From contig CM119373.1 of assembly GCA_051294905.1 (NCBI GenBank), positions 25,420,001 to 25,484,000 on the forward strand: a stretch of DNA of 64,000 bases, in the 5' to 3' direction. Shown here in pieces: positions 16,023 to 60,027 of this stretch. Every line of letters starts with the position of its first letter. Position 1 is the stretch's first letter. The stretch comes from Botryllus schlosseri. Taxonomy: Eukaryota. Under the pieces are notes generated by a model. That model was not told the origin of the DNA. It worked only from the letters and a program-made list of their open reading frames with translations, and ran no database searches. The translations under genes and the position numbers were made by a program.

Positions 16023-17309
16023 ATGAACATACTTTCAGACTGTAACATTCACGATGAAGTCACAGATGATATCGGACCTGAAGGAAAAACAATTGAAATT
16101 GACGGAAGCTCCATTGCGTTTCCAGCGGGCTGTTTCGATCAAGTGCAACGGGTATCCATAAGAGCAGACATAGATGATGCGGCGTGGCCTCAGGGCAGAG
16201 TCGGGATCACCCCTATTCTCCACATCGAAGCACCGGACTTGAGAGTCCCAGCCGCCGTTAAATTGGCAACATGGTGCGTTCCGGATGATAACGAGGAAAG
16301 TTCGATTGTTGACGTGTTACGCTACAACAGGGATAAAAATGACTGGGAACTGGTTCACAGCTCCCCTCTTGGAACGTCAGGATATATCGAATTCAAAATC
16401 GATCATTTTAGTAAAATTGCAGGCACTGCAAAGATTTCAGATGCTATTGATTATCTTTTGATGCCTAGCATTTATTCATGCGGAAGCATGCTTGCAGTTA
16501 CCACGACGTTGCATGATCAGACAGCCAGAAAGAGATGCCTCAAAAAATTAAAGGATGCATTCAACAACGAAGTTACCACGATGTTGGATAACATGGAACC
16601 TAGAAGCAAGTATCGGAAAATTACTAATAAAAGATTCATGGATGTAGTCACTGAACATAACTGCGACATTTTCTCCTGCAAGACTTCGCATTCACTACGA
16701 AGTGCACTATCTTGTAATACCTATCAAGATACCTTTACACTTTATCCTTGCGAGTTTAAACATCCATTGGTAGAAGTAGTCGAAGCAGAAGGTAGTCGCG
16801 TAGACACCGTCACAGTTGTAAGTAACGAAAAAAAGGCAGAAGTCAGCATGGCATTTCAACTCTACAGAGATGACGAGCCGACGCGTGAATGTAACTTCTT
16901 CTATTACTGGAAGCCACGTGACATACCTAGCACAGATCAAAAAAGCGTGCCTACTGCAGTCGAAGATCGGGGAGCGAATTCAAATACTCCCACCAAATCC
17001 AATGTCCCATCTAACATCGATCCTAATTCTGCAAACACTGACGGCGAGGGTGTTGAACAGTCCAGACATACCGGAACGGGAAACGAAAAACGCAAGGGCA
17101 GTTCAAGTCATAATGACAATCAGACGTTAAATCTTAATCAAAATCAAGATAATGAAGAGATGAATAAGTCAATTCATATTGGTCCTCATTCCACTGTATA
17201 CCTGAACAGTATGAATACGACAGGGATGGCTAACAGAGGTACGGCAACAATCCACAATAAAAATACTAGCACTGCAATGACCGCTGGGACAAGAGAAATG
17301 GCAAACTGA
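16023..17309 (+). CDS. ZU5-like (HFS motif) / UPA-like protein with a C-terminal Asn/Ser/Thr-rich tail and RHIM-like motif (428 aa, one long exon)
   Basis: ZU5-like pattern IGPEGKTIEI..SIAFPAGC...ITPILHIE...VKLATWC...W...IEFKIDHFS. Clear homology to 57148-57947. Tail contains SIHIGPHSTVYLNS. The frame stays open upstream to a possible phase-1 acceptor (ttcctag, 15969), so an upstream exon may exist. Confidence 0.75.
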   Translation: MNILSDCNIHDEVTDDIGPEGKTIEIDGSSIAFPAGCFDQVQRVSIRADIDDAAWPQGRVGITPILHIEAPDLRVPAAVKLATWCVPDDNEESSIVDVLRYNRDKNDWELVHSSPLGTSGYIEFKIDHFSKIAGTAKISDAIDYLLMPSIYSCGSMLAVTTTLHDQTARKRCLKKLKDAFNNEVTTMLDNMEPRSKYRKITNKRFMDVVTEHNCDIFSCKTSHSLRSALSCNTYQDTFTLYPCEFKHPLVEVVEAEGSRVDTVTVVSNEKKAEVSMAFQLYRDDEPTRECNFFYYWKPRDIPSTDQKSVPTAVEDRGANSNTPTKSNVPSNIDPNSANTDGEGVEQSRHTGTGNEKRKGSSSHNDNQTLNLNQNQDNEEMNKSIHIGPHSTVYLNSMNTTGMANRGTATIHNKNTSTAMTAGTREMAN

Positions 17310-17749
17310 AAGTCCGATGACGAAATTGTTCTCCCGTAATATTTATTTTTCATGAATTCATTCCTGAGATTCCTGAGCTCCCATCATATGTACAGAAACC
17401 GTCTGGACTTGACTGATTTGTATCTTGAGTTTATACCTAAAATTACCCATGTAGAGTTTTGTATGGATTGGCAATGTTATATTTATTCATAATTAGGCTA
17501 TGTATATAGGTATAGGTGTGGCTGTAGATATTTGAAACTCATACTTTCAGTGATCACTGGAGCTTTCTCATTACAATATGTGGACATCAATTCGCTTTAC
17601 TGATCCTCTCTTACGTGGCCACTTCGATTCCTCATGCGGCGATTTCTCTGTTCCGCCTTTCTTGACTGTATCGATATACTTGTTTCGGTCTTATAGTTTA
17701 TACAGGGCATAAAAATTAGAGGAGTCAAATGCGAGAAGGCCATTTAATA

Positions 17750-18193
17750 ATTGTAATGATTCGAATCGTGTCATTAAGTCGGTCTAGACTAGAGTAACAA
17801 AAATACAGATACTCTTGACTCGAAGTATATAGTTTCGATACTTTCTCCCAGCGGCGGGAACAGCGAAATATCAATTCTTAGTAACCCGACATTCAGAATA
17901 TACGTTGTAAAATGCTACTCTTGCTCGTTGAGACGACATTTCTGTGAATCGCAGAACGATCCACTGCATAGTCACAATGCGATATGTAATAAGTGGGGTC
18001 AAGGAATACAAAATTAATTTCAATGACGTGTAACTGGCACTCTTTTCCTTGCGTCTGCAAAAAAGATTTATTATTTTAACTTTCCGGAGTGTTATGACGT
18101 CATTACAGGATTCACTCGAACTCTCGTCTCGACTAGACGCATAATACTCGGTTTCTGGATAGAATCCCTAGATACTCAATTATCCCAACCCTA
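17750..18193. mobile_element. Degenerate hAT-type MITE remnant (same CTCGA-rich type as 22195/25000)
   Basis: Right end ATCCCAACCCTA at 18182-18193 with ctcga/tcgag repeats. The left TIR was not found. Confidence 0.4.
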
Positions 18194-18430
18194 TTTGTTT
18201 TGCCTATAACAGTAATTTGGCTGATTTAGTTAAGGATCGAATAAGAACCTGAAAGACTTATTCGGGAAGGGGACACATCTGCTCATATCAACTAGCAATA
18301 TAGTGTGATGTTAGACATGTGAACTAAACATGTATGCTTAGCAATGGCACAGAGAACAATTACAACTAAGATTGGTTTGGACTGTTACAAGCTCGTTGCT
18401 AAATTTTCAGTTGGACGATATCCGTTTCTA

Positions 18431-18779
18431 TGTCACTGACTAATGACCGCTCTGAGTATACTCTTGCAATCCTGATCACACACGCAGATCCAAGGAGCTT
18501 TCTTTACTAGCACAGAACAGCCAAATAGTAGTAATTAGTGGTCAGAAACTTGTAGATTTACCAGGTTCAAATGATACTGCGGTTCAATAAGAAATAGAAA
18601 GAATAAATGAAGCGAAATGGAGCCAATTGTCTATCTTACGACTGGAGCGCGAACGCGCCGACCTCAATATGCGGGTTCTGAGAACACGTGCCTCGCAGAT
18701 TGCCTGTGCCCGTGTGTGCCGTCACGGTTTTGGTTTGCGTGCGGCCTACTTATGCTTTCGCGTATGACAGGCGTTTACA
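18431..18779 (-). repeat. 3' LTR of the BEL/Pao element
   Basis: Direct repeat of 31406-31749 (10 substitutions and one 4-bp indel by manual alignment). Starts TGTAAACG on the minus strand. Confidence 0.93.
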
Positions 18780-18788
18780 CTCCCCCTC
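18780..18788 (-). other. Polypurine tract (GAGGGGGAG)
   Basis: Purine run on the minus strand directly abutting the 3' LTR start. Confidence 0.85.
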
Positions 18789-18988
18789 AAGGACATTTTT
18801 GTGCAACACAAAATGTCTTTACAACTATTTTCGTAAACAGTGTGGCTCCACGTCGGGGTATCGGGCTACAATGATAACACATAGAGTACGAGAGATCCAA
18901 ATGGTCTCAAATGGACGAAAACAAATAACGATAACAACAACAACAAAAAATAACGAGATTCACACGTATCACACAGCAAAACAGACAA

Positions 18989-19987
18989 TCAAGAATCGTC
19001 TGATATCAAAAGCACCAACTTGTGAATGGGGCGGTCAACATAAGTGGAAGAAGCAGTGCGTCTACTTTTTGCATCCAGCTCCGTTGTCGCAACTAACACA
19101 GTTGCTTTCCGAATGTGCCCATCACCACTTGGCGTGACAACCTCAACTCGGCCAAGTTTCCAAAAATTCCGGGGCTGATTAGGGTCAGAAATTAAAACAA
19201 TATCGCCGGGTTTGAAATCCCGTTTGACATCATTCCATTTACTTCGATTTTGCAGTGAGCTCAAATACCCACGTTTCCATTTACTCCAAAACTCATTGGC
19301 GAGGTACTGGACCCTGCGCCATCTTTTTACCAAATATATATCACATTTTTGAAATACTCCTGGTGGAGGCAACAAAACCTTGGACTTCAATGTGAGAATA
19401 TGCTGAGGGGACAATGGGATTGGAGCTGATGGGTCATTCAAATTTTGCACACACAACGGTCTTGAATTTACAATATTCTCAACTTCGGCAAGAAATGTAC
19501 GGTAAGACTCATCACACAAGATATGACCAAATTTCAGCAACAAGGGATTAAGAGCCGCCTTCACGGTTCGGATTTGTCTTTCGACTGCTCCTGACATGTG
19601 ACTAGCATGGGGAACGGCAAAGTTGAATTCAATAAAATCGCAATGCTCATTCAACAAGAAGTTTTTCACTTTAGTTTGGTTCAATTTCAAAGCAGCTTTT
19701 TTCAGCTCATTACTAGCACCGACAAAATTTGTGCCACAGTCACATCTCAGTTGCTTCATAGGACCTCTACGGGCCAACATTCTGCGTAGGGCATTGATGA
19801 AGGAATCAGTGGTCATAGCATTCAACGATTTCAAATGGATAGCACGAGAAGACAAACATGTAAACACAACACAATAACGCTTCAGAGTAGATCGCTTCTC
19901 CTTCACATAGTATATACCAAATACATCGCACGCAACGTAGGTGAATGGCGCTTCAGTATCAAACCTATCTACTGGCATAGGCGCCAT
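18989..19987 (-). pseudogene. pol: BEL/Pao integrase core (D,D35E) + DUF5641-like C-terminus
   Basis: VACDVFG...CDCGTNF...GAVER, then RWRRVQYLANEFWSKWKRGYL. It is in frame with the upstream RNase H ORF but separated by a TAG (PLES*KMAP). Confidence 0.93.
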
Positions 19988-19990
19988 TTT

Positions 19991-21300
19991 CTAGCTCTCA
20001 AGGGGCCGTCGCAACTTGCGACATGTAACACAACAACCAATTACATGCGTCACCCGAGACGATCCATTTATCAACCAATACCCGTGTTGCCGGATAAGAT
20101 TCAAAGTCATGTAGCGGCCGGAGTGGTTACTACGTTCATGAAAATGACGCACCAGCATATCAGTAATGCAAGACTTCTTGGGTATCAAAACTGGGTGCTT
20201 CACATCATAGGGTTCATCAGAATTTTCAATGCGACCTTCTAGTCGTAGCATACCACAAGAATCGAGAAATGGATTCAAGCGGTACAATGCGCTATTTTTC
20301 TGCAGTGGTTTCCCACTGTGCAAAGTCTCGATTTCCTTTGCGAAACATTCGTGCTGAGCTGAGCGCACCAGCAGACATTCAGCATCTTGAAGTAAACTTA
20401 CAGACAGATCTCCTGGATCCGATTTTTTCAATATAGCAACAAAACGCATGGCTTTCGCTACAGATCTCTTACACTTATCCCAACACGAGAAATGCCCAAG
20501 GCTATCTGGAACAATGACGCCAAACGTAGGGTGCGTTGGATTCTGTACTACGTTACTCACAAAGGCAGTTGCTTTTCTCATTTCATTAGCAATTACTGTT
20601 TTTTCTGACTCGCACGGTTCAAAGGTAGACTCAGGGGCCGCAAAGGGACCCACGACATGCAGGAAACTAGGGCCACACAACCAACGACATTTTGCATTAA
20701 AATCACTCACAGGGATACCTCTACTGGCATCATCACTCGGGTTTTTTTGCAGAAGGCACGTAGTACCATGAATCCCCATTAGTATGGTCATGGTTGCGAC
20801 ATACGCATGAAATCGCTTTGCGTCGTTTTTGATGTAGCCTAAAACTACCATGGAATCAACCCAGAAATATTCAACAACATTCTCATACTTCAACTCGTCG
20901 CGAAGAAACCGACTCATCCGCGACGACACAACAGCAGCGCTCAATTCCAATCTAGGAATAGAAAGTTGCTTATTCAATGGGGCTACACGAGCTTTCCCCA
21001 TCACAAGGGAACAGGACACATCCCCTTTATCATTTACCAAACGCACATAGGAACACTGGCCATATGCGAAATTACTAGCATCAGAAAAATGATGCAGCTC
21101 AACGTGCTCTACTTTGCCAAATTCAAGGGGCTTATAACAACGTCTTATGTGGACCGACTCAATTAAATGGATATCCGAACGCCATTTCTCCCAGCGCATC
21201 CACAACTCTTGGGAAACAGGGTCGTCCCATGATGCATTAGCTTTACACAGTGATTGCAAAATAGCTTTGGGCTCAATCAATATAACAGCGGCGAGGCCTA
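19991..21300 (-). pseudogene. pol: BEL/Pao RNase H (Pao peptidase A17-type region) and integrase zinc finger
   Basis: ELHHFSDAS..AYG, LVMGKARVAP, IPRLELSAA, FWVDSMVVL, NPSDDASRG, HERSNHSG...CVTCRK. There is a local deletion or frameshift in the YVATMTILMG region. Confidence 0.92.
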
Positions 21301-21364
21301 CACTGTAAAAACTGGGCCTACCCCTAGAGGTGGATCAAAATGCCACCCCATGATCAGAAGGGTA

Positions 21365-21465
21365 GGGTGGACTGGTCTACCTACGCCACAGGGTAAACTG
21401 GTCTAACCACGCCAAAGGGTAGACTGGTCCAACCACGCCACAGGGTAGACTGGTCTATCTACCCC
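21365..21465 (+). repeat. Subterminal 26-bp tandem repeat x4 (GGGTAGACTGGTCTAACCACGCCACA)
   Basis: Units start at 21365, 21391, 21417 and 21443, head-to-tail with no spacers. Confidence 0.9.
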
Positions 21466-21746
21466 TGTCCGGATATAACCCTTACCTATCCGGATATATC
21501 AACCTTGGGATATGCTTTACAAAAGTCAAACCAAGGCATAACAACCTATATCCTGCCCGAATATCTTCATCAAACGCTCAATCTCCGGTTACCAATACCA
21601 ACCCATATCTTTGTCAAACGCCTATTCCTGCTGCACTCTTATATACCATATCGGTTTTTGTGATGTTTATTGAAGTGTTCATTATGCCTCGCATGTTGAC
21701 ATAAATTACCAAACATCGACATCATTTCAGGCAACTCATTTGCAAA

Positions 21747-24067
21747 TTAGTCACTAATCTCGCGAAGTTTGGTGCGAACAGCACCAGTGGCCTTCAAATT
21801 AGGCACGCGAGCGAGAAAAATTGACATGAAAGTGAGAGATCTTTTAATCTTGGGTGAAAATTTCATGTTGAAGACCCAATGAATTGATATCATCACCGCC
21901 AATGCCTGATGAAAGCTGCGTATTTGTGTCACGCGTTGGCCTTCAAAGCCGACTGTCCACTCTTCCTTCGTCGTATCAAAACAAATGACCGGGTATCCAT
22001 TTCCGTGTTTGGGTGTCTGTTATTATATCAAAAAAGAATTAGGACAAATCTACACAGCACACCACACAGGCACAGACTTTTAGTAATCAGCAGTGTTGGG
22101 ATCAAGCCACTACCTTCGAGTGACGAGTCATTTCGACTAGAGTCAAGTCAGAATTCAAGTCAAGTTGCCTTTTAGAAGCAAGATGTATGATTACTAGGGT
22201 TGGGCACAATGATTCGAGTACTCGAATCTGAATCGAGTATTAATTTTAATGATTCGAGTCGAGTAGTAAAAGACCATTTTTTCGAGTACTGAAATTTTAC
22301 GCTCCTCGCAACTGGAAGTTAATTTATCATCGAGAATTATACTTTCGATACTAATTTTCACTGTTGAGCCTTGAAACCTTGGTTGACGGTATCGCAGCAT
22401 ACGACACATATAGTACAAAGCTACGTAGGTTACTGGACGCAGCACATTTTCGAAAGCATGATTATCCGACAACATTGTCACCAAGTCGAATGAAATCGGT
22501 CTCGTTCGGAAAATACCAAAGTATCATTTATGAGATGAGATTTTATTATTATTTTATTATTATGTTAGTTGTGGCAATAAAATATCAATGGTGCGTGATT
22601 TACATAGGAGTTAGTTGATAATGCATTCAAATGCTAATAACATTGATGAACTTCGTACCTGATCAATCAATAGGAAGTGCTCATACTTTTCGTTAAAAAC
22701 GGCGGGTACTGCTACCATCCAATCTAGATTCTGAGATTCTGTAAAAAAATACAATAATTAAGTCGGGAGTCGGGTACTGCGGGGAACATCTGGTTTTGAT
22801 GACCAATCAATATGGATCAAACCATACGGATTTTGGAAAATAATTAAACTTGGTACAGCTGTTGAAGAGGTCACAGTTCCTGAAAACCAACAGCTATATA
22901 TTGTGAGTAATAGCATGACATACTGGATAACTTTTGAATGACTTCTGGGACATTCTTCGAGCTGATTGTATATTGAGCGGAGCTGTACGCTTTGTCCGAA
23001 ATTCTTTTTGTTAGATCGACTTTACAGAGATCATCCTGACATCCAGAAGTGTGGAAAATTAGTTTGAATTCTGCAAGGACCTGGAAAAAGTTATGTCACC
23101 AGATGTGTCATCAGATCTGAGATTATGATGCTATATGTCGCATACCCAGGTAGCGTGTTGCAAGATAGGATATTTTTCGAGCACCTCCTTTGTCTCCATA
23201 CCACCATCGATATCGTTTCGTCGCAATTGAAACGTCATCCTCATCCTATTCTCCATTACTGTAACATCATGATGCTTTTTACGAAATTGTTCTTTCATGG
23301 TTTTTTGATGAGAAATCACGGCATACTCGTCTTCAGTGTTTGCGTAAGAACTCAAATCCGTCTGCAAAGTAGTCAAATTTTGAAATATTTAGCGAATATG
23401 AATTTTGATAATATTCACACTTACACTGATATTAATGCGCGGAGCTTTACATCTAGTAATAGTCTCTTCGTCATCATTTCTACTGACGGCCTCCCTCTTT
23501 CTACCAAATTTGCGCTTATTAGCCAAAACCTCGGCATCATTCTCAAGTTTGCGACGATAATCTTTGAATTTTGTTATCATCCGACTTTTCCAATAACCCT
23601 GAAACACATCGTATTGAGAAAAAATTATAAATCTCGTCCATAGAAAAACAACTTACATATTCAGATCCGTTTCCAAATATTAGTCTATCCTTCAAAACCG
23701 GGTACATGTTGACCAAAGTTTTACAGGCGTTTTTATATTGTTCGGGTTCCGGGTACCTGTTTCAATATAAAATAATATATATTAATAGTGGTAGAAAACA
23801 ATTTATTTCCATAAAATCTTTTTTGGTAATACCTTGTATATTTGACCATGTCCCAAAAAAGCGCAGACACAATATCGCGTCTGAGTTTTTCTGGAATAGA
23901 AGTCACTTTCTTCCCTTGATAGGGTTCCAGCTCCTGCTCGAGGTTTTTGGGCAAAGCAAATATATATGCTTTGGTCGGCCATCCAAGTCCCGCATCAGGA
24001 ATTTTGCGGTAAGGTTTTATAAGCGGGGTGCTGCATCTGGTAGCACCATTTGATGGCTTCATGTCAT
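21747..24067 (-). CDS. Spliced SAMD3-like / EnSpm accessory (TnpA-equivalent) gene, at least 7 exons, open throughout
   Basis: Exons 24067-23833, 23756-23657, 23598-23425, 23361-23146, 23080-22924, 22738-22659, 22016-21747. All are GT-AG and phase-compatible, with no stops (about 410 aa). Motifs RYPEPEQY...LVNMYPVLKD, YWKSRMITKFKDYRRK, TFQLRRNDI...VLEKYPIL, VLAEFKLI, SFHQALAVMISIHWVFNMKF resemble by eye the SAMD3-like ORF of animal EnSpm elements. A further upstream exon probably starts at 24314. Confidence 0.78.
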
Positions 24068-25000
24068 CTTAAAAAGGAATCAAACAAATAATAATCTAAA
24101 TCAGTGGTTTTCAAACACCGGCCCTGGCAAGTTTCCCATGCCGGTCCGTCAAATATATACAGACCAGAACGATGATGTCCATCATCACGGGCAGAAACGA
24201 CGATGCCGATATCTGTTGACGAATCAAATGCCTCGTTCTGGTTATCGCTGATTTCCCATAGCAAATCACCAACCCCCAAGTCATCTGAATCACCCTTTTT
24301 CTCGCCTGAACAATCTGTAATGAGATAACAGTACATTGAGCCTTATAAGATATATGGAGGTTAATTGAGGAGGTTAATGGCATTGCAGGCAGACATGGTG
24401 CAAATTCCCCTGGCAAATCCCCAACTCCCGGGTCACCTTTTTTCTCGCCTGAACAATCTGTAATGAGATAACAGAGCGTAAAGTACATGCGTAAATGCAG
24501 ATTATACAATCTCCTCGTGTTAGCGAACTTGCACGTATGATGAGCTTGTCAACGAGTCCATAAGTGCTGTCAACTAGCGAGCACCTGATCGCTCGCTCGT
24601 AATATGCGTTGATATGCGCGTAATACGCGTTGAGAAAGCTCGCGTATTCAATCATTCGCGAGAGATCAGGGACTCGCTAACTAACAGCACTTCCGGACAC
24701 GTTGGCAAGCTTATCATACGCGTAAGTTCGTCAACGCGAGGCGATTGTATAATCGTCATTTACGCATTACTTAACCATAATGAATCGATGCTATAAAAAT
24801 CGAAACCCCGCCCTCTTCATTTCAAACCCCTCCCATATTTTTCGGCTGGCTACGCGCCTGAACCGGCATTATATTTTCTGTGGTTGCATAAAAGGTGCTC
24901 ATTTGATACTTGACATATTACATTCTGCTATGACGTCATAATGAGCGATACTCGAATACTCGAATCGAATCACTCAGGTATTCGATTTTGCCCAGCCCTA
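22195..25000. mobile_element. Pair of facing hAT-type termini (TAGGG(C/T)TGGGC) enclosing most of the SAMD3-like gene
   Basis: TAGGGTTGGGCA at 22195 and TGCCCAGCCCTA ending at 25000, both with CTCGAAT subterminal repeats. Flanks ATGATTAC / CTCATTAC match at 6 of 8 bases. Confidence 0.55.
24481..24772. repeat. ~290-bp imperfect palindrome
   Basis: 24481-24553 is the reverse complement of 24700-24772 at roughly 80% identity. The inner part is also self-complementary. Confidence 0.8.
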
Positions 25001-27462
25001 CTCATTACAAGATACAGCATATCGAAGAGGAGTGCATCGAAGTGTCGTTTCGTAAGCACGTATTTCTTTAGATCAAAAGCGGTGCACGCATTTAGGCATG
25101 GTCTGATTTTGATTGCAATGTAATTGCAGCATGACTAATAAACACTATATATCATGAGAGGCAATTTGTAGATAGAGATTAACTACTTGGTACAAATATT
25201 TGAAGAGATCACGGCTTCTGTCAAAATCAACAGCTTTATTGGAATAAATACATAGATAGCAGAAAGAGAAGAACATACCCATAAGATTCGAACCAATTCC
25301 GCATTGATCACGCTTATTTAGTCTTCAGGTACGAGGTACATAAGTCGAAACAGCTTTCTGCAAAGCAAAGCAGTCAAATTTTGAAATATGCACTGAACCA
25401 GAATAAAAATTTCATTAGGAGATTGAATGTGTGGTACCGAAACTCAAACATTTTTGCAACAGGTGAAGCAGCGAAAACGAAGCATCCTCAATACAATATA
25501 CATTTGTATAGGCAGCTAGTGTGAAATGGAGATAGTTTTAATAATCTTTTAGCTACAATTTCTTTACAGCGGCTTTCTGTCCTGAATAGCTGATGCGGAT
25601 GAAATTTTAGTACTGATTAATTTGAGACCACGTCATATTTAGAGAGCAGTGCCCCTTTAACTCAAACTGTACCACAGGCACAAACCATTCGTTCTAATGA
25701 TGGTAAGTTTGAAAGCATCACTTTTACCTAGAGCATTTTTCTTTGGCTCTCCGCCAACATATTTATAGCTTAATTTATTTCAATACAGATAATTATAATT
25801 TATGTATTATAATTTTATCGCGCGCACTCGCGCATTCATACACATCAAATATACAAACACGATGCCCACAGTCTCATTCAGAAATGACGAAATTTGCATT
25901 ACCAAAGTCTGTGGTGACTGCTATGGCACGAGCAGACATAATTTATAGCCTTTACGGTGACAGCAGGGTGACTTGGTAAACCAGACGAATTTTCATGATA
26001 GTGATATTCAGCCTGCCAGACGACCAATCAAGTGTGCTGCGGACATCAATTCCATACTGGATATACTAGCATGGTTTCATACTAGAAAATGACATCATGG
26101 ATTGCAGTAACTTCTTACTTCTAATATTTGTTATCAACTATAATTCAACCGAACAACTCTGACTCAATGACTCTAACTTAAGCATGTAAATTTGAAAAGG
26201 CAAATTAGAAGCATGCAAAATACACTTATGAGTGCATTGTCGTCTCACCTTTCCTTTCTTCACGTAACGTAATCTCCAATATGGCGTCCGACCGTCAGTG
26301 TCAGAAACAATCGAGCAAATACCGTAACCGGTATATGCCAGCGAGAATAGAATGCGTTCATACCGCATCCCTTATCAGGATGAACCGGACTCATATTCTA
26401 AAACGTACAACTATTGCCCTGTGCAGTGAGAATAAAGAAATTCGCCTCATAGTAAAACTGCAAGACACATTCGCCATCTTTCCCCTTCCGCATTCGCTTC
26501 GCGCTTTCGAGCCTCGGTTGGCGAGTCACTAAAGCGTAACCGACCCGGTTGATCAATTAGCATCGGATATTAGTATCTTCACTTTGTGTGCGTGCCACTT
26601 CCTACATTCACTAAATGAATATTATAGCTATCATTATTGAGTTAAGAGTAGAAGTTGATCGAATATGATGGTAAGATGTCAGTCGAACCATTAGCTCATC
26701 TGTGTTTATAAAGCTCGGTGGTTGAAAGGGGTTTGTCGCTTCAATTTGATTCCCGCGGAAACACAGCTGACTTCGTGGGATCGCCGCGCAAATAACTGAG
26801 GCGTTGCATTACGGTGATATGAATAATATTATCTCGATACCGTGAACAACGATATTAGAATTTTAGATCAAACTTTATTCGGTATCGCCTTATCGGTAGC
26901 TCGGCATCGCCTAAATTTCATTATATAAGTTTGTCTCTCTATCTAACTGTGAGTTTAAAACGAAAACAATGTTGCGATTTCCTGCTACAGGCTCACTGCT
27001 AAATTTTGAAATGAACAAACTAATATATCTTCATTTAACTCGTTCAATTTCTCTTTAATGATGCTGATTTGCACGACTGACCGATAAATATTCTTTCACT
27101 CCCGCTCTCTCTGTATCGATAAATGGTATGTCTGTCAGTCCGTTGATTTGACCATCAGCGACTTTGAGCACATATGCATTCAATCTCGCGACATCAACGC
27201 CGCGCAAGCATCTCGCGCGTACATATACAGCGCAGGTGATTGAAATGTTCATAGCGGAAACATATGTATCCTCAATTGATCAGAGGTGTGGTCGCCGTGC
27301 CACGCTTAATCCAGGGTGGCTGGATGCAATCCACTGTAATGCAGGGGTAGGAGCAACATTCCCACGCCTATTCTACCCTAAACGGGGGTGGAACAGGGAG
27401 GTACACTCCTGCATTACGGTAGATCATCCCTATCCACTCCTATTCCACCCCAAAACCCACGG

Positions 27463-28434
27463 TTATTTTTTACAGTGTAACGGGTCATATATTGAAGCCA
27501 CTGTCGACAAAATGCCACGCCGGGTACACGGACAATCTTTGAGTTGCATGCGAAACTGCAACGAATCATTTTCGATACACCAAACGATACCAAGCGTTCT
27601 TACATTGGGCAATGCGTCCTTTTTCAAATCAACTTCTTTTATGTCCTTAGCTCTATCGGACGGTTCAATACTTTCAATCACTTTACGACTATTTGAGACA
27701 AATTTGCAAAGCTTCATGCCAAAATTTTCACACAACGCGCTGCTACTTTTGGCCAGCGCGATCATCTCAGATTCATCGTCTAGGGATATTATGCCACCAT
27801 CCATATAAAAGTTATCACGGATGAAATCTGCCGCAGGCGTGCCAAATTCTACTTCACCATCATCTGCCGCACGTTTCCGGCCAAAGTTGCAAACGGAGGG
27901 ACTGCTACAAGCCCCGAACAAATGAACTTCTAGACGATACTCTATTAACTTGCCATTTACTACGCCACCATCTTCCCACCAAAAGAAGCGCAGCAGATCA
28001 CGGTGCTTGGGACTGACAAAAAACTGAAAGAACATACTTTTCAAATCCGCACTCATGGCGTAATCAAACTTTCCCATTCGACAAAGCACACCTAACATTT
28101 TGTTCAACAGATCTGGGCCAGTTAGCAGGTAATCATTCAAACTCATGCCTAAATACTTGGCAGAGCCATCAAACACGACACGAATTTGATTTGGCTTACG
28201 AGGGTGGTACACACCCATGTGGATCAAGTAGTTCACTTTACCATTATTCAGATCAAGCTCATTGTCAGGGACTTTCTCGGCATACATGCTCAAAATATCA
28301 CTCATAAATGTGGCATAGTCATTACGAAAATCATCATGCTTTGCCAAACGCTTACCAAGTTGGGCAGTCCTTTTCAAAACGAACGATTTGTTGTTGGGAA
28401 TATCGACAGTCTCGTCTCGAAGCGGGAGAGGCAT
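27463..28434 (-). pseudogene. pol: BEL/Pao reverse transcriptase (catalytic YxDD changed to YMDG; true BEL sequence ends at 27478)
   Basis: RVVFDGSAK, LLTGPDL, SADLKSMFFQ, VHLFGACSSP, DNFYMDGG, RTLGIVW, TRRGILSTVASIYDPL. The final HCKK* is read from the inserted transposon end. Confidence 0.93.
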
Positions 28435-28437
28435 TTC

Positions 28438-31269
28438 CTAGTGCTTGTCTGGACGCTGCTTTATCCCGTCTGAAATCATCTGCAGGAATCTTCGATCTTC
28501 TACGGAGAGCGACGATAAGTTTCCTTTATGCTCGGCGAACTCCAATTCGAACATGTTCTTCACGGCGTTCGGGTTGATTATCTCTTTTGCTCGAGACGCT
28601 AATACGATGTTAGCGTCATTGTTCATTTCTTGCACCATGATCCCATGACATATAGCATTGTTAGGATCAACGCCTTTACAGATTTTACCCACAACACCCC
28701 ATCCCAAGTCTGTCTTCATAGCAAACGGCTCGTTATCTCCCCCAGCTACCACCTCACGAGGGATTAGGGCTGCGACCACATCACTTCCCAGCAAGATGCC
28801 GACTTTAGCATTCGGTAGATAAGGAGGCAACTCATCTGCTACCTTTTGGAGGTGGGCCCATTCTTTGCATGCGGACGCTTTAGGAATCTGTGTTCTGTTC
28901 GCGGGTATCTCATCTCTGGCATACGCTTGTGTTACGTTGACACTCTTCTTCTTGTCATAAGATGTAACTTCGAGGTTCCAAACTTTCTCAATAGGCCATG
29001 CATCCTTTCCGCTCATTGTAGACAACTCGACATGTGTGGATTGACTATTCAGACGAAGCTCATTCTTTATCTCTTCCGTAACAAAAGAACGGTTACCCAA
29101 CGAGTCCAGTGCGGCGTGACAAAGGGTAATCTTCGTGGGATCCGACTTGGGATTAACCGAGACCGGCACCAGCATGGTATTATCGATTTCCATGTTTTCC
29201 GACTCGCAGACTTGAATGCAATTTGAAACACTGGGAGTAGAACTCAAATGGAGGCTAGTAAAATGAAACTTGCCGCATTTCTTACAAACCACGCGCTTGG
29301 TACAGACTTGACCCTTGTGGGATCTAGTACACTTTTCTCCACACCCATAACATAAAAATTTGTCGTAAATATACGATCTTCGCTCAGAGAGGGGCAACTT
29401 TTCGAAATCTACACAATCCGGGATATGATGGCCCTTCTTTTTACAAAAGATGCAATCGAACTCATCTGGCTTCACATTAGTTCCGAATGACACACTTGGC
29501 TTATCACGTGAAATCTTTTGGGCGGAATGAGTGACGTTACTATGTCGGTCTTCATTAAGCATTCTGAATTTCGGCATGTTTTCAAGATCCGACTGATCTC
29601 TTACAAATGACACGAAATACTCAAAGGGCGGGTAGCAATTTTTATCATTCGTTTCCACTTTGTATTGCGACACTTTAACACGCCTCTTTTCGACTAGTGA
29701 CGGAGGTAACTTCTTCACTATGTACATATGACTTGACGAGTAATCAAGAATGCCCAACTCTGATACATAATGCTTGTTGACTACTACTTGCTCCAAAAAA
29801 TCAGAGAATTCGCGCAGGCCAAGTTTGTCATATTCCTTTATGTAGCGCCAAGCACGCAGTCTATTCAGGAAGGTTTGGCCAATGACAACAGGGCTTCCAT
29901 ACCTGTCTCGCAAGTCTCCGATTGCTTTTTGGTAGGATTCCTCCGTACCATTCAAAAAATGACTTTTAACAACTTTCAACGGGTTGGGACCAAGATGCTG
30001 TTTCAACAAATTCATCTTCTCATTGACACAGCAGACTCTATCTTCCACCAAAGCCTTGAACGAATTTTCGCACTCTATATAGTTGGTTTCATCACCATCA
30101 AAAACCCAAACTTTTATATCGGGTATTCGCGTCCTAGGTCTTACATTGTATTGATGTTCACTTGGTATGAGCATGGGATGATCGGTGGGCGGCTTAGGAC
30201 TCGGCACAAACAGTTTTTGTTCAATTACTTGCGGTTCGACACATGAGACATGGTTCATTGGGGGACATTTATCAATAACTAACGTTGGTGTTTTAGGTTC
30301 CGTAAATTTGACAGCAGATGGCCTTACTTCGGGACGGTCATGAGAGTCACTTAAAACAAAGTTTTTTACCTTGTCTCCCGAATCCAAAACCGGAACTCTA
30401 TTCTGTATTTCTGCGAAGCTAGATCCAACATACTGGGTATCTTCATCCAGACCGAAGGGGTTTTCCTCCTTTTCAATTCGCTCGCAAACTGCGATCACGG
30501 CTTCTTTTTCAGCAATTTCACTCTTCAGAGCCAATTGCGACAACTTTGCTTCATCTTCAACCAACTTTCTCTTCATTTCAGCTTCTTGCTCTGAAAATTC
30601 CAGTCTTGCTTTCAAAGCGGCTGTTTCTTTTTGGTGATCATGAATCTGCTGTTTGTGACTGGTGTGACTGTGTTGTGAATGTCGACTCGATCTCGAGCCG
30701 GCTCCAGATCTCGCTCGGCTACGGACGGATCCATTTTTGGATGGAAGCATCATGAAGGCCGCAACGGCTTGCCGAATTCTTCTGAAATCTGTTTCAACCA
30801 ACCTCAGACTGTCGGTGAAATCTTTTGTTTCCGTATTCCTGGCGAACTTCGAAACAATCTCTCCAGTAATTTTCTTCAATTCATCTCGATGACACATAAC
30901 TCTTTTCATTGCTTCGCGCACTTCCTCTTTATTTGCGCATAGCGCCACAACATTCTCAGTTGCGTCGATGCATCTTTCAACTTCACCTTTTGTTTCATGG
31001 AACTGGTTGCCAAGTTAAGTCAATCTCTGATCGAATCCGTGGAACAAAGTGCTGACACTACTGGTTGTATCGTCAGAACCCACTGACTTGCTCTTCACGG
31101 GGCTCTGGTCCACATTTTCTTTCTTGACACTCCCACGTTCATCTTCAACATTTTCCGAACTTGGCGGAGCTGGGCAGCCAGCACTTGTCTCTGACGTTGC
31201 CACAGTTTTACTTTGTACGGCTGAGCAGTCTGCTTTCTCTGGCGTTGCTGCAGCTTCCATTACTTTCAA
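28438..31269 (-). pseudogene. gag: BEL/Pao gag (DUF1759-like capsid, zinc knuckles) + aspartic protease
   Basis: VFDGDETNY, LRDRYG, CIFCKKKGHHIPDC, LCYGCG...H, CKKCGKFHFTSLH, degenerate protease ALDSLGNRSF, ILLGSD. The N-terminal piece (31015-31269) is cut off by a stop. In-frame TAG at KH*EMPLP. Confidence 0.9.
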
Positions 31270-45703: not shown

Positions 45704-45797
45704 GGAAGGTACTTTTGAAAGCAGTATTAAAATTTTGTACCACCAACCAATTATTCAATTACTATTTATCTTCAAAGTAAATGCTCATTGCATGAAG

Positions 45798-46279: not shown

Positions 46280-46363
46280 GCATGAAGCCTCAACAGTTAC
46301 ATGAGTGGGGTGACTAGACAATGAACATAGTCACATTTGCAGCATATCATGAATGTCTCTTAC

Positions 46364-50759: not shown

Positions 50760-50885
50760 TCCCAGTCATGCATGAACGCCAAGCGGGGAAGTCATGAATA
50801 CCAGTGTTACAAATCCGGTCTATCGTCTGACCCGTCCAGTGGATTGACCTAACGACCTACCGATCAGGAAGCCGGACGCGAACCT
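50760..50885 (-). mobile_element. Possible tRNA-derived SINE fragment
   Basis: The minus strand reads GGTTCGCGTCC…GGTCGTTAGGTCAATCC…ACTGGTATTCATGACTTCCCCGCTTGGCG, resembling the B-box and body of invertebrate tRNA SINEs. No A-box was identified. Confidence 0.4.
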
Positions 50886-52790: not shown

Positions 52791-53299
52791 AATATTAATT
52801 AAACATACTCCGACAGGCGGACCCGTTGGTACGACTACGTTACATGATGTTATTTCGTGACCTCCAGTCTGCTATATCAAAAAATATAGAATGGCCCAAA
52901 CGTACTAAACTAAAAGATGCACACGATTTCAAATTGGTAGTTCTTCACTGGCATATAATTATTCCCTGCGGGATGGTAGCCTATTTGTCTCGTGAGGTTC
53001 AGATTGCCAAGACAGGAACATTCGGCGCCAGACATTTAGGCCACCTATATGTATTTTGTATATACATAACGAAGTTTTCGGTAAGCGTAAGGGCAGTGCT
53101 TTTCGGCCAAGGTTTTCTCGCCGCCGTTCGTTCTGGCACACTTCTTGGAGTCGCATGTTACATGGTCTAAGACTTTATATGTCTTAGTGCGTCGTGGCGC
53201 GGTAATGGCCAACGCCGATATCCCCACTTCTATAGATCTTGCGTATTTTATCCTGCTGGAAGAGTACCCAATGATTAAGGTATTTTGAGATTTGAAATC

Positions 53300-54808
53300 G
53301 CGTGCAGCCATAATCGAAACAAATTCAGCCCCTGCCCGTCGAATTAACACTGATATTGAGCCCACCATAGGGTTGTTGTTGTTTATTTAACAACAACAAA
53401 AATTGGCGCTTATCGCCTAACGACCTTTTGCACCACGGTCGTCGAGCATAGTAGGCTACACAAATAAAGGAGATAACACGAAATAATGATCAATAGCACA
53501 ATAAAGTAGAATCAATCAGGTGAGATGGCGATTAAAGAATAACACAAATTGATGCACGTACGAACATAACAGAATAGAATAACAGAAATATATTACAGAC
53601 TACGGTTATAAACAGCCGTTACACGATAACACAAATTCAACGACATGCGGGATTATACGAGAATCAGTGAGCAAATCATCAATACATAAATTCACTTTAA
53701 ATTGAACACATTTATCAATAAGAAATGAACGATGAAAGTCATATTTCGGGCAACTAATTAAGAAATGATCCACAGTTTCGGGGTAGCGGCAGTAACAACA
53801 CGCAAGAGAGTCTACCATTCCAAGTTTAAACAAATGGCCGTTTAATCGACAATGACCTGATTGGAAACGAAGGATTACATTATCATAAAGGCGATTACCA
53901 TAACCCGGGGAAGGATCAAGAACATAACTGTTGAAGGACTTGTAACGAATACCGTTTTAAGATCTCTGGTATTCTTGGTCCCACAATGCCATGCAGTGGC
54001 GACGTACCACCATAGGGTAACCGATCTGATCTTCAAATTTTGTGAATGAGATCGGTCTATAATATTACTTTCTCCATGCATGTATTACTATAAAATTTTG
54101 ATCCTGTTTCCGCCCACATGATCATACTTAGTAACAGAGCTGATGGAGGACGATGACTTCGAAATTACAGGGAACGGAATTATACATCGTCAAGTCGTGT
54201 CATGTGTATTTATGAACCAAAATGCAGATCCGAACTAGCAGATTGCCCATGCGGTGGTTTTTAGCCTTTCATGGTCGCGACTCAATTTCTAATTTGAATT
54301 TTTTTTGATAAACTGATTAGTGACAAACGGTCACCACCTTTGCCCAGACTTACTCACGGCCTATTTTGGAAGCTGATCATGTTCAAGATCGTCGCGAGCC
54401 CCAGAATAAGGACAAACGACCCCAGGTTTAACGCCAATAGCTTCGACTAATGCATCTAAATGGCCTTTACCGACTCCAGTAATACATCGTTCTCCTATAA
54501 TTGCGATTACAATTGGACTTTTTCAGTAAATGCTGGTTATTTTTAATAATTTTTGATTGCATTTTTTTGCGAGGGTGGTCGAATAAAGAATGTAGCAATA
54601 AATCGCGCGCAGTGCAAAGAAAAATATCCAGCGGCATAAATCTGCTCAAAGTAACGTCGTTTCTCTTGAATTACGAAAACATTTTGATCCTATTTCAACC
54701 CTTCTAAAATCCGGACATTTAGGCATATTTCAGAAATTTTTCCCGGGCGCAGTTTCAATAGTGAAATTCCGGACCTGTCCGGGAAATTCCGGACGTATGG
54801 CAACCCTA
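53300..54808 (-). mobile_element. Third copy of the 12148/12989 hAT family, one end truncated, interrupted by a LINE fragment
   Basis: Ends GGACGTATGGCAACCCTA at 54808. Colinear homology with 13170-14074 across the LINE insertion (gagcccaccatagggt…aaccgat). Confidence 0.8.
53374..54006 (-). mobile_element. 5'-truncated I/Nimb-clade LINE fragment (different family from 4721-10153)
   Basis: 12-bp TSD CCACCATAGGGT (53362-53373, 54007-54018). (AAC)n tail. Encodes an ORF2 C-terminus (ILRFQSGHCRLNGHLFK…CCYCRYPETVDHFLISC…LLTD) homologous to the full-length element, with an in-frame TAA upstream. Confidence 0.9.
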
Positions 54809-56660
54809 TGGTAGCTCTACGTCCAGGACAGTGCCAAAGGGGTGAACAACATTTCTATTCGGTAGCAGATAGCCGTGAAGCACCAGCAGATTTTCAATGT
54901 CTATATGCCTATTACGTATTATATATTTTGACACAGCTTGATTCTCTTACTCTCTACCTACGCAGTTAAGTACCAGGTTTCAAACTTTTTGTAATCGTTG
55001 CTGCTGTTCGGTATAACGATATCCACGGAGCCTGTATGCTGAATAGTTCGAGATTGAAATTTCAACAATGTAAAATTAACTCCACCCATATCCCACCAGG
55101 CTGCACCAAACTTTTGGTTCCTTGTTGACGCGGAAAAGTACATCGGTGTATGCGCAGCAGCTATAAAGGTTGCAAGCATGTTTGGTTCCATTTACCGTTG
55201 TGTATCAGCAGTTCCTGACATGTACTTCATTAGCAACAAACACAGAACACGCCTTACTGATGTACATCCGGAATACTCACGGTGCAGTTGTCAAGTTACA
55301 TATCAGAGTACAGCGCACTAGTTGATAACAAGCAATGCCAGGCTTACCACGGACTGATATAGCAACTGATATTAATATGTCCAGTCCAAAGTGTGACATG
55401 ATTTATTTAAAAACTTGAGTTGACTGTTGATGCATAATTTATACAAACATGGTGCGAAGTAATTCAAGGTTTCCTAAAAATGGTTGTAGCTATAGCTAGT
55501 TGAATTAGGATTTTTCAATTTTAAAAGACTGTCTTAGAAGTCTTCCCACATTGTGATTGCTGCCTAGTGCTATGAATATAAAAATGAAACTTCATCCTGA
55601 TACGGGTAAACGACGGGAGTAATTGGTAGCTGGCCGATTCAGTCAGTACCCAAGAAGTAACTCTTGGTTACAAAAAGGCTGGTGACCCCTGACGTCGTGT
55701 ATTTCGTTCTTGATGTTTTGTGATTGGCTAGGTGCATGCTGGTTTGTAATTGATTTTTTTTTAAGCTGCCAAACCCATACAGAGTGGTCCGAATTTGAAA
55801 TGCAAAGAAATTGAGCCAAAAGTGCGATAATGGCATGACAAAATGTAATACATGAAAAATGTTCACACTGCAGAACCTACCAAGGTTCGTTTGTGAAGGT
55901 GAACCTATAAATTTGTTAGGTTCACACACAGAACGCGAACGTGAACCTCACGCCCAAACCATCGCTACTATATATGCAATAACCTTGCGAGTTCGGTTAC
56001 GAGCACTTCCGTATTTCGAGTCGTGCTTGGCACAGAACCATCTTATATGGAATTTCAAGGTAATCCGTCCTTATCGCCCTTGATTGATTTCAGGGTGAAG
56101 GAAAACACCAATTGACCGGATAAGTCGGGTTGTTTAATTATGGCCGTCAACCAGTTACTCACCATGGAATTTTATACTTTCTAGGACAGTCTCCGCTTAT
56201 GGGATCGGAGGTGTGGAGAAAAAGCAAAAGATCGAACCACGAAGGTGAAGTATATTTGATGGCATATCACATTCGTCGTTCGCATTTACCCCACTTAACT
56301 GCATTGTTGAATTCATGATTGCGTGATTTGACATAAAACGGGAATGTCACTTTATATCCACGTATCTATGTTTCAACTAAATTTTGAGTTCATGAGACGC
56401 CGGTATAAACGACCGGATATCGCTTTTATGACCACAAGAGAGAAGATTAGAGTACTTTATTTCAATAGTTGGTTAATGCCAAGTGTATATCTCACATGCT
56501 CATGAATACAGCTCCGAAACAAATGTTTTCAAATGTCTACGAACTCTAATAGTAGGCATTTTATCAGAAAATATCACAATCTATTATTGACAGACAATCA
56601 CACAATGAAACTTAATGAGATTGAAAAAAAACCTGTAGCCCGGTGTTCTACCACATACTA

Positions 56661-57073
56661 CAGGGGCTGGCAATTTCTCCAGTCGGCGGGTCGGATATGG
56701 GAATATGAAGTACCTGGCGGGCCAGAGTCCTGCATCGATTCATTATTCGCGGATTTATCCAACTATAGAAGGAATAAATCGTATTTAATATACTTCAATA
56801 GCTGTTGAAGTCAATGAGAAATCTGTGGTCGATCAAAGTTGTCAACAAATTATTTGAACTCTGGCTGCATGTCGTCGGACGTAGAAACCCTTAGTAAAGA
56901 CTAGATGTGAATATCAATGAGATTGGAACGCTGCTTTGCCTTGCTAATGTTCATGGTCGAAAATGATTGCTCGCAAATGTATGTAGAACCGCGAGCTATA
57001 TTTACATGTAAGACTGGAAAGTGTCTGCGGGCCGCTTAAAATACCGTCACCGACCGTATGTTGCCCTCCCCTG
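56661..57073 (+). mobile_element. hAT/Charlie MITE (413 bp)
   Basis: CAGGGG / CCCCTG ends. Perfect 8-bp TSD ACATACTA (56653-56660, 57074-57081). A related left end occurs at about 11822. Confidence 0.88.
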
Positions 57074-57147
57074 ACATACTACGATTGCATTCGAAATAAG
57101 ATGTCATTGGAAGATGAATCAATAAAGTCTAATTGATTAACTTTTAG

Positions 57148-60027
57148 CGCTAAGAGAAACAACCACTGTCGAAGTTGGAAATAATTACCAAGAATTGGAA
57201 ATAGCCGATTGCAAAGTTACGTTTGATCAAGGATCGATTACTGATATTCAGGAAGTAACAATCACAGCTGAGGTAAACCCTGAAAACTGGCCTCCGGGAA
57301 GAGAAGCCGTTACTCCCATGCTACACGTAGATGCGCACAAGCTACTCAGACAAGCAACGGTCAAATTGCATACTTGGTGTGCTTATGACTGCCGGCCGCA
57401 GACGGAGGAAGTCATGCGGTACAGCGAAACAAACACGGAATGGGAGTCAGTACAATTTTGCACTGTCAGCGAGACACGTTACATTGAATTCAGCGTGGAA
57501 CACTTCAGCTGGGTTATCGCCATCTTGAAAACATTTTTTTCAGCGTCATATATCATGAGGCCGATCGTGTACTGTTCCCATACTACCTTCGTGCTAGCTC
57601 TGCTGCGCGACACAAAACTTCAAATACAGAATTTTCAACAAGAAATGAACATTTTTTTTCATTCCGGATATGAGGAAAAGAGAATTCAAGCGATTGAATG
57701 CAAGAAAGATGACGAAATAAAGACATTAATCTCTTGCATCAAACCAGCAACCGGTTTCGGTTCTTGCCGCATTCTATGTACATTCATTCCGTCCGATGCA
57801 TCGTAACAAATAGCGGGCCATCATACCGAATTTACGACTTGGCTAGTGATAAACCGTCTCAACAGATCACGATTAAAGTCGAGTCGAAAAACGGTAGCAA
57901 AGTATTGTCACGCAATTGCTTTGGCTTCTTCTGGAATGGTGATAAAGGTGAGTCTTACCTCGTACCCAAAACCTTAGATGCAACATCGAAACTACGTCTA
58001 GCTGGAACATTACATTGAATGCTGTAACACTATTCATTGCATGATAATATCGCGTTACATCGATGTTATAGGCTACTTATCTTATCTTACGAATAATAAA
58101 TTTACAGGTAGATCCCTGCATCACCAGCACGTATCCGACATTTATAACGGGAAAATGGTAGTCAACGTTCATGGAACAGCATACTTAGCTGATGGGGACG
58201 TAATTCATGGAAGCACCATCGGGACTTTGAATAAAGGGGAGATTCATAACGAAAACCACGGTCTTACGAGCGTCGTATCTGGACAAGGATATACAACTGC
58301 AGATAGTACTACGTCAGTGGAGATGACACGGATGCGAAATTGCGCCAGAGAAGACAATGCAGTAGACTCAGGTACCATGCATTTATGTTTATCTGCCAGG
58401 AAGGTATGGAAATCTCGCGCCCTGCTAGATTTTACGGATCACAAATATATTTATTCAGGTCTACCAACTGAAGGGGCAAAAGAAGTAAAAGATAGAGTTA
58501 TTAATTTGGAAGGTACTGTGTATATAATATTATACATTCAACATGTGCCGCTATAAGGGATCATGAGAACTGGGAAATCTTTCTATTCCACTTCATGTCG
58601 TGACCCTGACTTAAATTACCCGGCCCTGTGAAAACTGTCTACAGGATCACAGACCCACCACTGTCATCGCTCCACCCGCAATCATCGTTCATTTATTGAC
58701 AATAGCCTACATGCGAGGGAAGCTCATTCCGCATCGAATTACAGCTCCCTTGCGATTACATACTAGAGCAGGACATGGATCGAAGCCGGATCGGATAGCC
58801 GGTCGGATTTTCTCATTTTTTCCGGAGCCGGATAAGCATTACCCCTCTTCCACCCTCGAATCAATTGTTAAAGTGAAACGTTCATGGAAATAACCCACAT
58901 GCTAAGTCCAAGTTGACATACTTAGTTCAAATAAGGGCTGGGTCTGATTTGTGAGTTTTTAATTTCCTGTATGCAATATTTCAATCAATATTCAATACCG
59001 TCCTGTAAGTACATAATTATTATCGGAGTTTTCCGGGCCGGATCACTGTCATTTTTAGAATCCGGCCTAGGAGTGGAACCGGGGTCGTAACAGAGCTTTA
59101 ATAAGCAGAATCGGAGTAGGACCAGAAAATTTGTCGATTCGCTTCGCACTGATACATACACACACCACGGAGAAAGAGAGATTAATCTCCTGTATTTGTC
59201 ATTTCGAATGCCCAGCTCCGATAATTATCGACAGTATCACTTGAATTTCAAGTCGTTGCGTTTAAAATCGATGATGGTGTATCTCAATGAAATTGCTCAC
59301 CGCCGCATATGAAGCGATCATATAATGAACCGCATTCTTTATTGGCCGTACTGCAGGGTGGAACATTACTAGATTCATAGAATTAAAGCCGTAAAACAAG
59401 GCAAGCATATTGGATCATAGTTTCTATGTTTACGTACTTTTTGCAGACAAGAAAAGAAAATTGATGCGCGAGAATGGCGATGTTATTAAAGCTTCGGAAA
59501 TTCTGGTCGAATTACAAATATTGAGAGATCATGAGAATGTAGATGACTTATTGGATATTGCGGTGTGCGAGCTACATTTAATGAGAGGTCGGGACGAGAG
59601 TTCGCTGCGGAATTTAAAAGATTACATTTCGCAGTCACCATGGCTGTCGGCAAGGGATGTGAGATTATTCGGTTGCCAACTTGCAAGGTTTGAAGGTCGG
59701 TTCGCCGCAGCGATAATCTTGCTGATCATATCTCACGAACTGCGAAATCAAGAGAGACGATTGACGCTAACGGAGGAAACCGAATGGAGACTAGAACTCT
59801 TGAGCGAGATCCGTGAGTTCCTCAAACTATTGGAAAATGACGCCACAAAATTCAAAGAGCCAGCAGTCATGCTCGTCAAGAAAGCTGTAGAAATCTTGAA
59901 GAAAGACATGCCGACGCAGCGCGAAGGCTATGATGACCATGAAAAGTCACCATATCGAGACGAGACAGGTAACCTGAAGTTTGTAATACCCAGATTAATT
60001 TCAAAAATATTACGGGAACCACTATAA
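57148..60027 (+). CDS. Multi-exon paralog of 16023-17309: ZU5-like (HFSW) + UPA-like + Gly/Asn/His-rich segment + helical C-terminal domain; one frameshift (pseudogene or assembly error)
   Basis: Exons 57148-57947 (acceptor ttttag, donor AAG|GTGAGT), 58108-58371, 58459-58512, 59447-60027. All introns are GT-AG and phase 1. The first exon is 800 nt, one base short of a whole number of codons, and the frame switches between 57713 and 57803. Upstream exon(s) were not identified. Confidence 0.7.

Follow-up and report, generated by a model that had tools for sequence, protein, structure and literature searches.

What might a self-cleaving ZU5-UPA module signal through when no death fold follows it? 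The NLRP1, CARD8 and PIDD pathways centre on the coupling of self-cleavage, in a FIIND or ZU5 region, to the polymerisation of a CARD or death domain. The question is raised by a stretch of 64,000 nucleotides from the tunicate Botryllus schlosseri (assembly GCA_051294905.1, contig CM119373.1, positions 25,420,001 to 25,484,000, forward strand), here called the window, which carries two related loci, gene 1 (16023-17309) and gene 2 (57148-58371; positions are those of the window). An earlier note on this DNA had seen in them a two-gene family that joins a PIDD-like ZU5/UPA module to a RHIM-like amyloid segment. We find that both genes are members of a large, fast-evolving ZU5-UPA family of the FIIND/PIDD kind, in which a short Gly/Asn/His/Thr-rich motif takes the place of the death fold. 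In the literature we found no account of ZU5-UPA linked to a tail motif of this sort, and the architecture appears to be undescribed.

The 428-codon open frame of gene 1 lies at 16023-17309, just where the note had placed it, and its predicted parts are the following.

16039-17309, plus strand: large 3' exon with ZU5-UPA, linker and tail, from a predicted phase-1 acceptor (AG 16037-16038) to the stop codon
16050-16412, plus strand: ZU5 domain, ending in HFS (16404-16412); predicted local distance difference test (pLDDT) score of AlphaFold2 above 90, ankyrin ZU5 structures align
16413-16910, plus strand: UPA domain, ending in FFYYW (16896-16910), supported by alignments to UNC5b and to the UPA fragment of rat NLRP1
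16911-17168, plus strand: linker of low complexity, rich in Ser, Asn, Thr and Asp, pLDDT below 50
17169-17306, plus strand: tail motif SIHIGPHSTVYLN...TTGMANRGTATIHN...GTREMAN, scoring 9.8 bits with a tail hidden Markov model (HMM; see below); the segment quoted in the note is at 17169-17258

The fold of gene 1 was modelled with AlphaFold2 using an alignment of 25 paralogs (A1). The pLDDT exceeds 90 for residues 1-295 and drops below 50 beyond (residues 296-419, predicted to be disordered). Searching the PDB with Foldseek, the model matched the ZU5-UPA-death domain structure of UNC5b (E 4e-10) as well as ankyrin, rat NLRP1 and CARD8. In VIA-align, residues 1-287 of the model superimpose on UNC5b with a Z-score of 18.9 (2.9 Å, 253 residues), followed by ankyrin-B (Z 17.7) and by the FIIND of rat NLRP1 (Z 14.9) and CARD8 (Z 14.8), each with about 240 residues aligned; the ankyrin ZU5 alone covers model residues 1-128 (Z about 13), and subdomain B of the GAIN domain gives a Z-score of about 10.8. 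Matches in the AlphaFold DB comprise UNC5A-D, UNC5CL, MACC1, SH3BP4 and residues 456-775 of PIDD1, for which the TM-scores are lower than for UNC5. A ZU5 β-sandwich directly followed by a UPA domain is strongly supported by these models for residues 1-295, in line with the ZU5 and UPA folds postulated earlier. A helix insertion of about 25 residues inside the UPA of gene 1 is missing from the paralogs in the family alignment. At the level of sequence, the fold leaves few traces: the window proteins have no match to Pfam FIIND (best E 0.15, in one of 25 members), a word-based protein search with gene 1 and a search of the PDB sequences with the 25-paralog profile (E ≤ 10) returned nothing, and single domains from the ascidian Styela clava reached, among PDB sequences, only the ankyrin ZU5 at E 0.34.

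The HFS motif had been claimed to end the ZU5 domain as in PIDD1, and the structures agree. It comprises residues 128-130 of gene 1 (model residues 119-121) and is located in the loop after the strand formed by residues 112-117. In rat NLRP1, the UPA chain that lies C-terminal to the cut (7crv_D) matches model residues 121-288, from the Ser of HFS onward, and on this ground the model places the motif exactly at the ZU5/UPA boundary, where FIIND and PIDD are cut. F-S or F-C occupies the junction in 21 of 26 copies of this genome (14 as HFS) and in most relatives. D'Osualdo et al. are said to have found, in 2011, cleavage at SF|S in NLRP1 and CARD8 and at HF|S in PIDD (as cited in PMC8195603). 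The His that precedes F-S in the window genome is as in PIDD and unlike NLRP1 and CARD8, whereas the junctions of the Styela relatives are nearer to SF|S than to HF|S. The conserved (H)F-S/C at this position argues for autoproteolysis, which we regard as its most likely function.

Gene 2 is homologous to gene 1 through the ZU5-like domain, as had been proposed: its open reading frame (ORF) at 57195-57806 shares 33% identity with residues 24-165 of gene 1 (E 5e-27). All motifs that the note had quoted are present in the two genes (WPQGR/WPPGR, TPILH/TPMLH, VKL.TWC, HFS, FFYYW/FGFFW), and so are both tail segments. In contrast to gene 1, the tail of gene 2 is contributed by an exon of its own.

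57148-57947, plus strand: ZU5-UPA exon, 800 nt, with HFS at 57501-57509 and the acceptor AG at 57146-57147
57948-58107, plus strand: predicted phase-1 intron (GTGAGT...TTTACAG), 160 nt, canonical and keeping the frame, as read from the sequence
58108-58371, plus strand: tail exon, 264 nt, symmetric (phase 1-1), with the motif VVNVHG...GDVIHGSTIGTLNKGEIHNENHG at 58158-58250

The family is far larger than two genes. A six-frame search of the animal's own 495-Mb genome returned 46 stretches for gene 1 and 48 for the profile of the 25 paralogs, the latter representing about 38 loci on at least 10 contigs. With about 38 loci, joined by relatives in Styela clava, the notion of a two-gene family has to be given up. 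In about 30 of these loci the ZU5-UPA frame is uninterrupted, and the ratio of nonsynonymous to synonymous substitution rates (dN/dS) of the domain is 0.36-0.63 among paralogs. In most paralogs no ATG is seen close to the beginning of the frame, and nearly all have a polypyrimidine tract and a phase-1 AG 5-20 nt before the start of the conserved domain. These two features indicate that the ZU5-UPA ORF is a downstream exon in nearly every copy; and because the acceptor is kept across paralogs, most of which have no ATG at all, the ATG of gene 1 at 16023 is probably fortuitous and not the true start. A contig of sequencing run X3 aligns to gene 1 from 16037, preceded by 7 unmatched letters, and in L042, a transcript-like contig of a relative, the frame is open upstream of ZU5 right to the sequencing adapter. 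A tblastx comparison of the 1.5-kb upstream flanks for shared 5' exons gave repeat noise alone. The 5' ends of the gene models are incomplete, i.e. their upstream parts are missing. A further architecture of the module is seen in L044 (287-2446; G000:C3:13221586-13223745, plus strand), an ATG-initiated single-exon ORF of 719 residues with three BACK-like repeats followed by ZU5(HFS)-UPA and no tail; Styela P0036 likewise has weak BACK and ZU5 matches.

What follows the UPA domain is not a death fold. Pfam matches to Death, CARD, PYD or DED are absent from all 25 members, and the tail of gene 1 is predicted to be disordered, in accordance with the claim that these proteins have no death domain. 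Instead, a Gly/Asn/His/Thr-rich tail ends 13 single-exon paralogs and, via the separate exon, gene 2. Elsewhere in the genome the tail exon of gene 2 has four clear paralogs (E 4e-19 to 2e-10; alignment A2), and the invariant positions of these exons read V.N..G...DV..G..IGT.N.G.I.NEN. Across the family a shared core, T-(I/T)-G-T-x-N-x-G-x-(I/M)-x3-N-E-x-C-x2-V-I, is preceded by (I/V/F)-(N/H)-(V/I/A)-x0-1-G-(G)-D, and the ending GTR(E/G)MAN is common to gene 1 and paralog L014. In Styela the tails directly after UPA have a related pattern, F-Y-G-D-(V/F)-x-V-x-G-(D/N)-M.

The relationship between the tails was assessed with HMMs built from one subgroup, the others being scored against 300 composition-preserving shuffles. 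The first HMM, built from the tails of the C5/C3/C4 paralogs, gave 17.8 bits for L014, 13.0 for L012 and 9.8 for gene 1 (1 of 300 shuffles scoring as high), and an HMM of the gene 2 type gave 11.7 bits for L007, 9.0 for L009 and 6.8 for L003; the gene 2 tail itself was not significant with the first HMM (22 of 300 shuffles as high). A genome-wide profile search for tail exons, which is insensitive to such short motifs, recovered the five known copies and two weak ones, and nothing more. Apart from that of gene 2, the cross-subgroup scores are well clear of those of the shuffles, and they indicate that a weak but non-random motif is common to the subgroups. The dN/dS of the tail is about 0.4 in the deeper pairs (0.35-0.5 for the gene 2 tail exons), the same as in the domain, indicating that the tail is constrained coding sequence. 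The predicted complex of four copies of the gene 2 tail scored 0.00, which is evidence neither for nor against assembly.

A context for the module is offered by its relatives. HMMER, run exhaustively over 1.8 billion representatives, returned 42 relatives; the named ones are all 'uncharacterized' proteins of Styela clava and the rest come from assemblies of sequencing runs. In P0012, P0017, P0020, P0024 and P0030 of Styela the module is C-terminal to NACHT, with LRR-like and FN3-like regions in between. In P0031 a caspase domain comes immediately after ZU5-UPA, and in P0033 it is followed by the motif FYGDVHVRGDMNIN and then by a protein kinase and an RNase L/IRE1-type Ribonuc_2-5A domain; these two fusions suggest what the downstream effectors of the module might be. 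Hydrophobic, i.e. membrane, segments follow the module in P0007, P0019 and P0023, and some Styela relatives have two ZU5 copies. The domain partners are those of an innate-immune or cell-death module that has been shuffled between proteins, and the role in immunity or cell death that had been proposed for the window genes gains support from the fusions to NACHT-LRR, caspase and kinase-RNase. Kaur et al. (2021) described ZU5/FIIND autopeptidases as shuffled among invertebrate immune proteins (PMC8195603), and a survey from 2024 did not find an NLRP1- or CARD8-like protein in Ciona (PMC11258412).

Of 224 NACHT candidates in the Botryllus genome at least 94 exons pass the Pfam threshold, most of them single open frames of some 500 residues, and four ZU5-UPA exons have a NACHT exon 10-33 kb upstream on the same strand. 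One homologue of the tail exon of gene 2 (G000:C1:1195775-1195957, minus strand) has no ZU5-UPA exon in its vicinity and is located 9.7 kb 5' of a NACHT exon (G000:C1:1185581-1186075, minus strand). The motif cassette may be in use at NLR N-termini as well, and one NLR first exon reads MAEGEHVTQQFGNSTVNVVAGDQYIYGK, carrying STVNVVAGDQYIYG. A sharing of motifs between NLRs and tails is hinted at by these sequences and is a lead, not a result. Two side observations may be added here. The genome has undergone a large NLR expansion with NACHT clusters on C1, C10 and C16. In Styela, V-x-V-x-P-x-L-x2-(I/V)-x-F-Y-G is conserved just before NACHT in P0017, P0020 and P0030, and x-F-Y-G recurs after UPA in the tails of P0030 and P0020/P0049, the P0017 tail being without it; the statistics are weak, and x-F-Y-G before NACHT and after UPA may be a paired motif.

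Based on these findings we consider it moderately probable that the products of genes 1 and 2 are immune modules of the FIIND type that cleave themselves and then signal through homotypic assembly of the released UPA-motif fragment. The module would occupy a single phase-1 exon, joined by splicing to exons upstream of it, which in Styela clava encode NACHT, LRR and FN3-like regions. Autoproteolysis at the (H)F-S/C of the ZU5/UPA junction would leave a C-terminal fragment in which UPA is followed by a disordered linker and then by the Gly/Asn/His/Thr-rich motif. This motif would take the position that a CARD or death domain has in NLRP1, CARD8, PIDD and UNC5 and act as an element of homotypic assembly or recruitment, possibly in a β-arch or amyloid-like form, and the released fragment may seed signalling to downstream effectors of the caspase or RNase type. 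The amyloid form of the tail is a reasonable hypothesis within this scheme.

Each known system covers part of this design. The FIIND of NLRP1 and CARD8 has the same two-domain fold, with F-S at the ZU5/UPA junction, where FIIND is cleaved, and in NLRP1 the module is C-terminal to NACHT-LRR just as in several Styela relatives, but a CARD comes after FIIND where the window family has a short disordered motif. In PIDD1 (LRR-ZU5-ZU5-UPA-death domain), HFS ends ZU5 as it does here; the window genes have, however, a single ZU5 and no death domain. The supramodule of UNC5, ankyrin, UNC5CL, MACC1 and SH3BP4 provides the best structural matches with only 10-14% sequence identity, and proteins of the UNC5/ankyrin type differ from the window family in that they do not cleave themselves and have a death domain or another folded domain after UPA. 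With the RHIM proteins of amphioxus and the amyloid signalling motifs of fungal and bacterial NLR systems (HET-s, PP, sigma, BASS) the window family shares a short Gly/Asn-rich motif, flanked by disorder, at the usual place of death-fold adaptors (PMC4262963); the consensus of these motifs is different from that of the window tails, and no profile match was found.

Several observations, on the proteins as well as on the loci, weigh against this reading. Pfam ZU5 (PF00791) is matched at E ≤ 1 by neither gene 1 nor gene 2 nor any of the 25 paralogs; as the relatives P0010 and P0017, both retrieved by HMMER with gene 1 as query, pass its cut-off (23.5 and 26.2 bits), the family's link to Pfam ZU5 is a transitive one. 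The His of HFS is mostly Asp, Glu or Lys in the Styela relatives. Compared directly, the tails of genes 1 and 2 are not significantly alike (BLASTP E 0.2), so that of the likeness asserted in the earlier note only the part that runs via intermediate paralogs is credible. None of ten tails has a Pfam match at E ≤ 10, RHIM included, and Smith-Waterman comparisons of NLR N-termini with tails are marginal (0 of 300 shuffles for the L007 tail, most comparisons being non-significant). The ZU5-UPA modules could accordingly be real and the tails fast-evolving, disordered C-termini that carry, instead of a self-templating or amyloid element, an ordinary short linear motif for, e.g., docking, degradation (a degron) or modification, which we regard as possible though not probable. 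The predicted disorder, the weak conservation of the motif and the missing Pfam family, be it of RHIM or HET-s type, would all fit such C-termini. Yet the alternation of hydrophobic residues with Gly and Asn resembles known β-arch motifs, the motif sits exactly where NLRP1, CARD8 and PIDD have their polymerising CARD or death domain, and the homologous cassette exon 5' of a NACHT exon stands apart from any ZU5-UPA exon. If, on the other hand, the tail were a true but divergent RHIM, homologous to those of RIPK1, RIPK3, ZBP1, TRIF and amphioxus, this would account for the tetrad of hydrophobic, polar, hydrophobic residue and Gly (IHIG, INVG, LNIG) amidst disorder and for its place in the protein, as RHIMs of amphioxus occupy the usual positions of death folds. 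The cores of the tails (IHIG, VNVHG, INVGG, LNIG) have, however, N or H at the position of the Q in the RHIM core, (I/V)Q(I/V/L/C)G, and no Gln, the Gly position shifts and the Asn at +3 is not conserved. Kajava et al. (2014), who reported many RHIM proteins of immune architecture in amphioxus, noted that tunicates appear to be without RHIMs (PMC4262963). We thus take a true RHIM to be quite improbable; 'RHIM-like' describes a resemblance, and membership in the RHIM family is not supported by these sequences.

As to the loci, gene 1 is nearly without RNA coverage in two bulk RNA-seq runs from this species, of which about 6% was sampled and aligned to 11600-17500, and no upstream exon or splice joint of gene 1 was recovered from the reads and contigs aligned there. 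A NACHT exon or another 5' exon of the Styela kind was found nowhere in the window. At least eight family loci carry stop codons, and the ZU5-UPA exon of gene 2 contains a frameshift of 1 nt near 57753-57758: database relatives align to it without a gap but change frame, the first frame reaching 57758 and the second beginning at 57740-57746, and its 800 nt are a multiple of three minus one, while the intact paralog L019 keeps a single frame throughout. Because of this frameshift, the gene 2 copy would be either a pseudogene or the product of an assembly error. Together with the retrotransposons that flank the loci, these facts are what one would expect if both were non-functional relics, i.e. 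exons orphaned or pseudogenised in the course of duplication and exon shuffling within a transposon-rich region. Nevertheless, gene 1 has preserved a 428-codon frame with all family motifs, the intact paralogs number about 30 with a dN/dS of 0.35-0.6 in domain and tail, and the frameshift of gene 2 may be a homopolymer error of the assembly. On balance the view of both loci as relics seems rather unlikely to us.

If genes 1 and 2 do encode self-cleaving modules with a signalling tail, a cleavable module would here be coupled to a short non-globular motif, in dozens of copies and in the chordate sister group of vertebrates. Should the motif self-assemble, death-fold polymers and amyloid-like motifs would be interchangeable outputs of one sensor design, and NLR-linked amyloid signalling would extend to tunicates. 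Going further, one may speculate that stolidobranch tunicates, for which both RHIMs and NLRP1/CARD8-type sensors have so far been reported absent, rely on FIIND-like cleavage and release, the freed UPA fragment signalling not by a CARD but by an amyloid-like motif specific to the lineage. The cassette would also have been shuffled onto NLR N-termini, caspases and other effectors, as an animal counterpart of the amyloid signalling of fungal and bacterial NLRs; we deem this wider scheme unlikely as it stands. Even without amyloid, NLRP1-like NACHT-LRR-ZU5-UPA proteins, all now annotated as 'uncharacterized', are documented in tunicates.

The earlier note had described gene 2 as a spliced gene of 57148-60027. 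The splice to the tail exon is canonical and in frame, but the frame of the first exon is shifted and the join to the last part, although phase-compatible, is unsupported. That part is the following feature.

59447-60027, plus strand: helical, TPR-like exon with a compatible phase-1 acceptor, its membership in gene 2 being doubtful

The extension of gene 2 to 60027 is doubtful because the paralogs of the helical exon never adjoin ZU5-UPA or tail exons elsewhere in the genome. The exon was also considered as a death fold and rejected, the AlphaFold2 model having a pLDDT of 66 and weak, TPR-like structural matches only. It is duplicated in tandem just past the end of the window (G000:C3:25484067-25484615, 44% identity), and six further paralogs are found on C1, C3, C10 and C15, of which L033 and L034 are longer, with TPR-like repeats at the end.

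The window sequence contains no N, has a G+C content of about 40% and includes retrotransposons, two of them on either side of gene 1.

4805-9969, minus strand: probable intact non-LTR (long terminal repeat) retrotransposon with two long ORFs (487 and 1233 residues), between the start of the window and gene 1
18989-30948, minus strand: probable LTR retroelement with ORFs of 836, 323, 429 and 332 residues, immediately 3' of gene 1

In the former, the ORF of 487 residues has zinc-knuckle-like Cys/His motifs and that of 1233 residues contains endonuclease, reverse-transcriptase and RNase H-like sequence; the ORFs of the latter contain gag-, protease/reverse-transcriptase-, RNase H- and integrase-like sequence.

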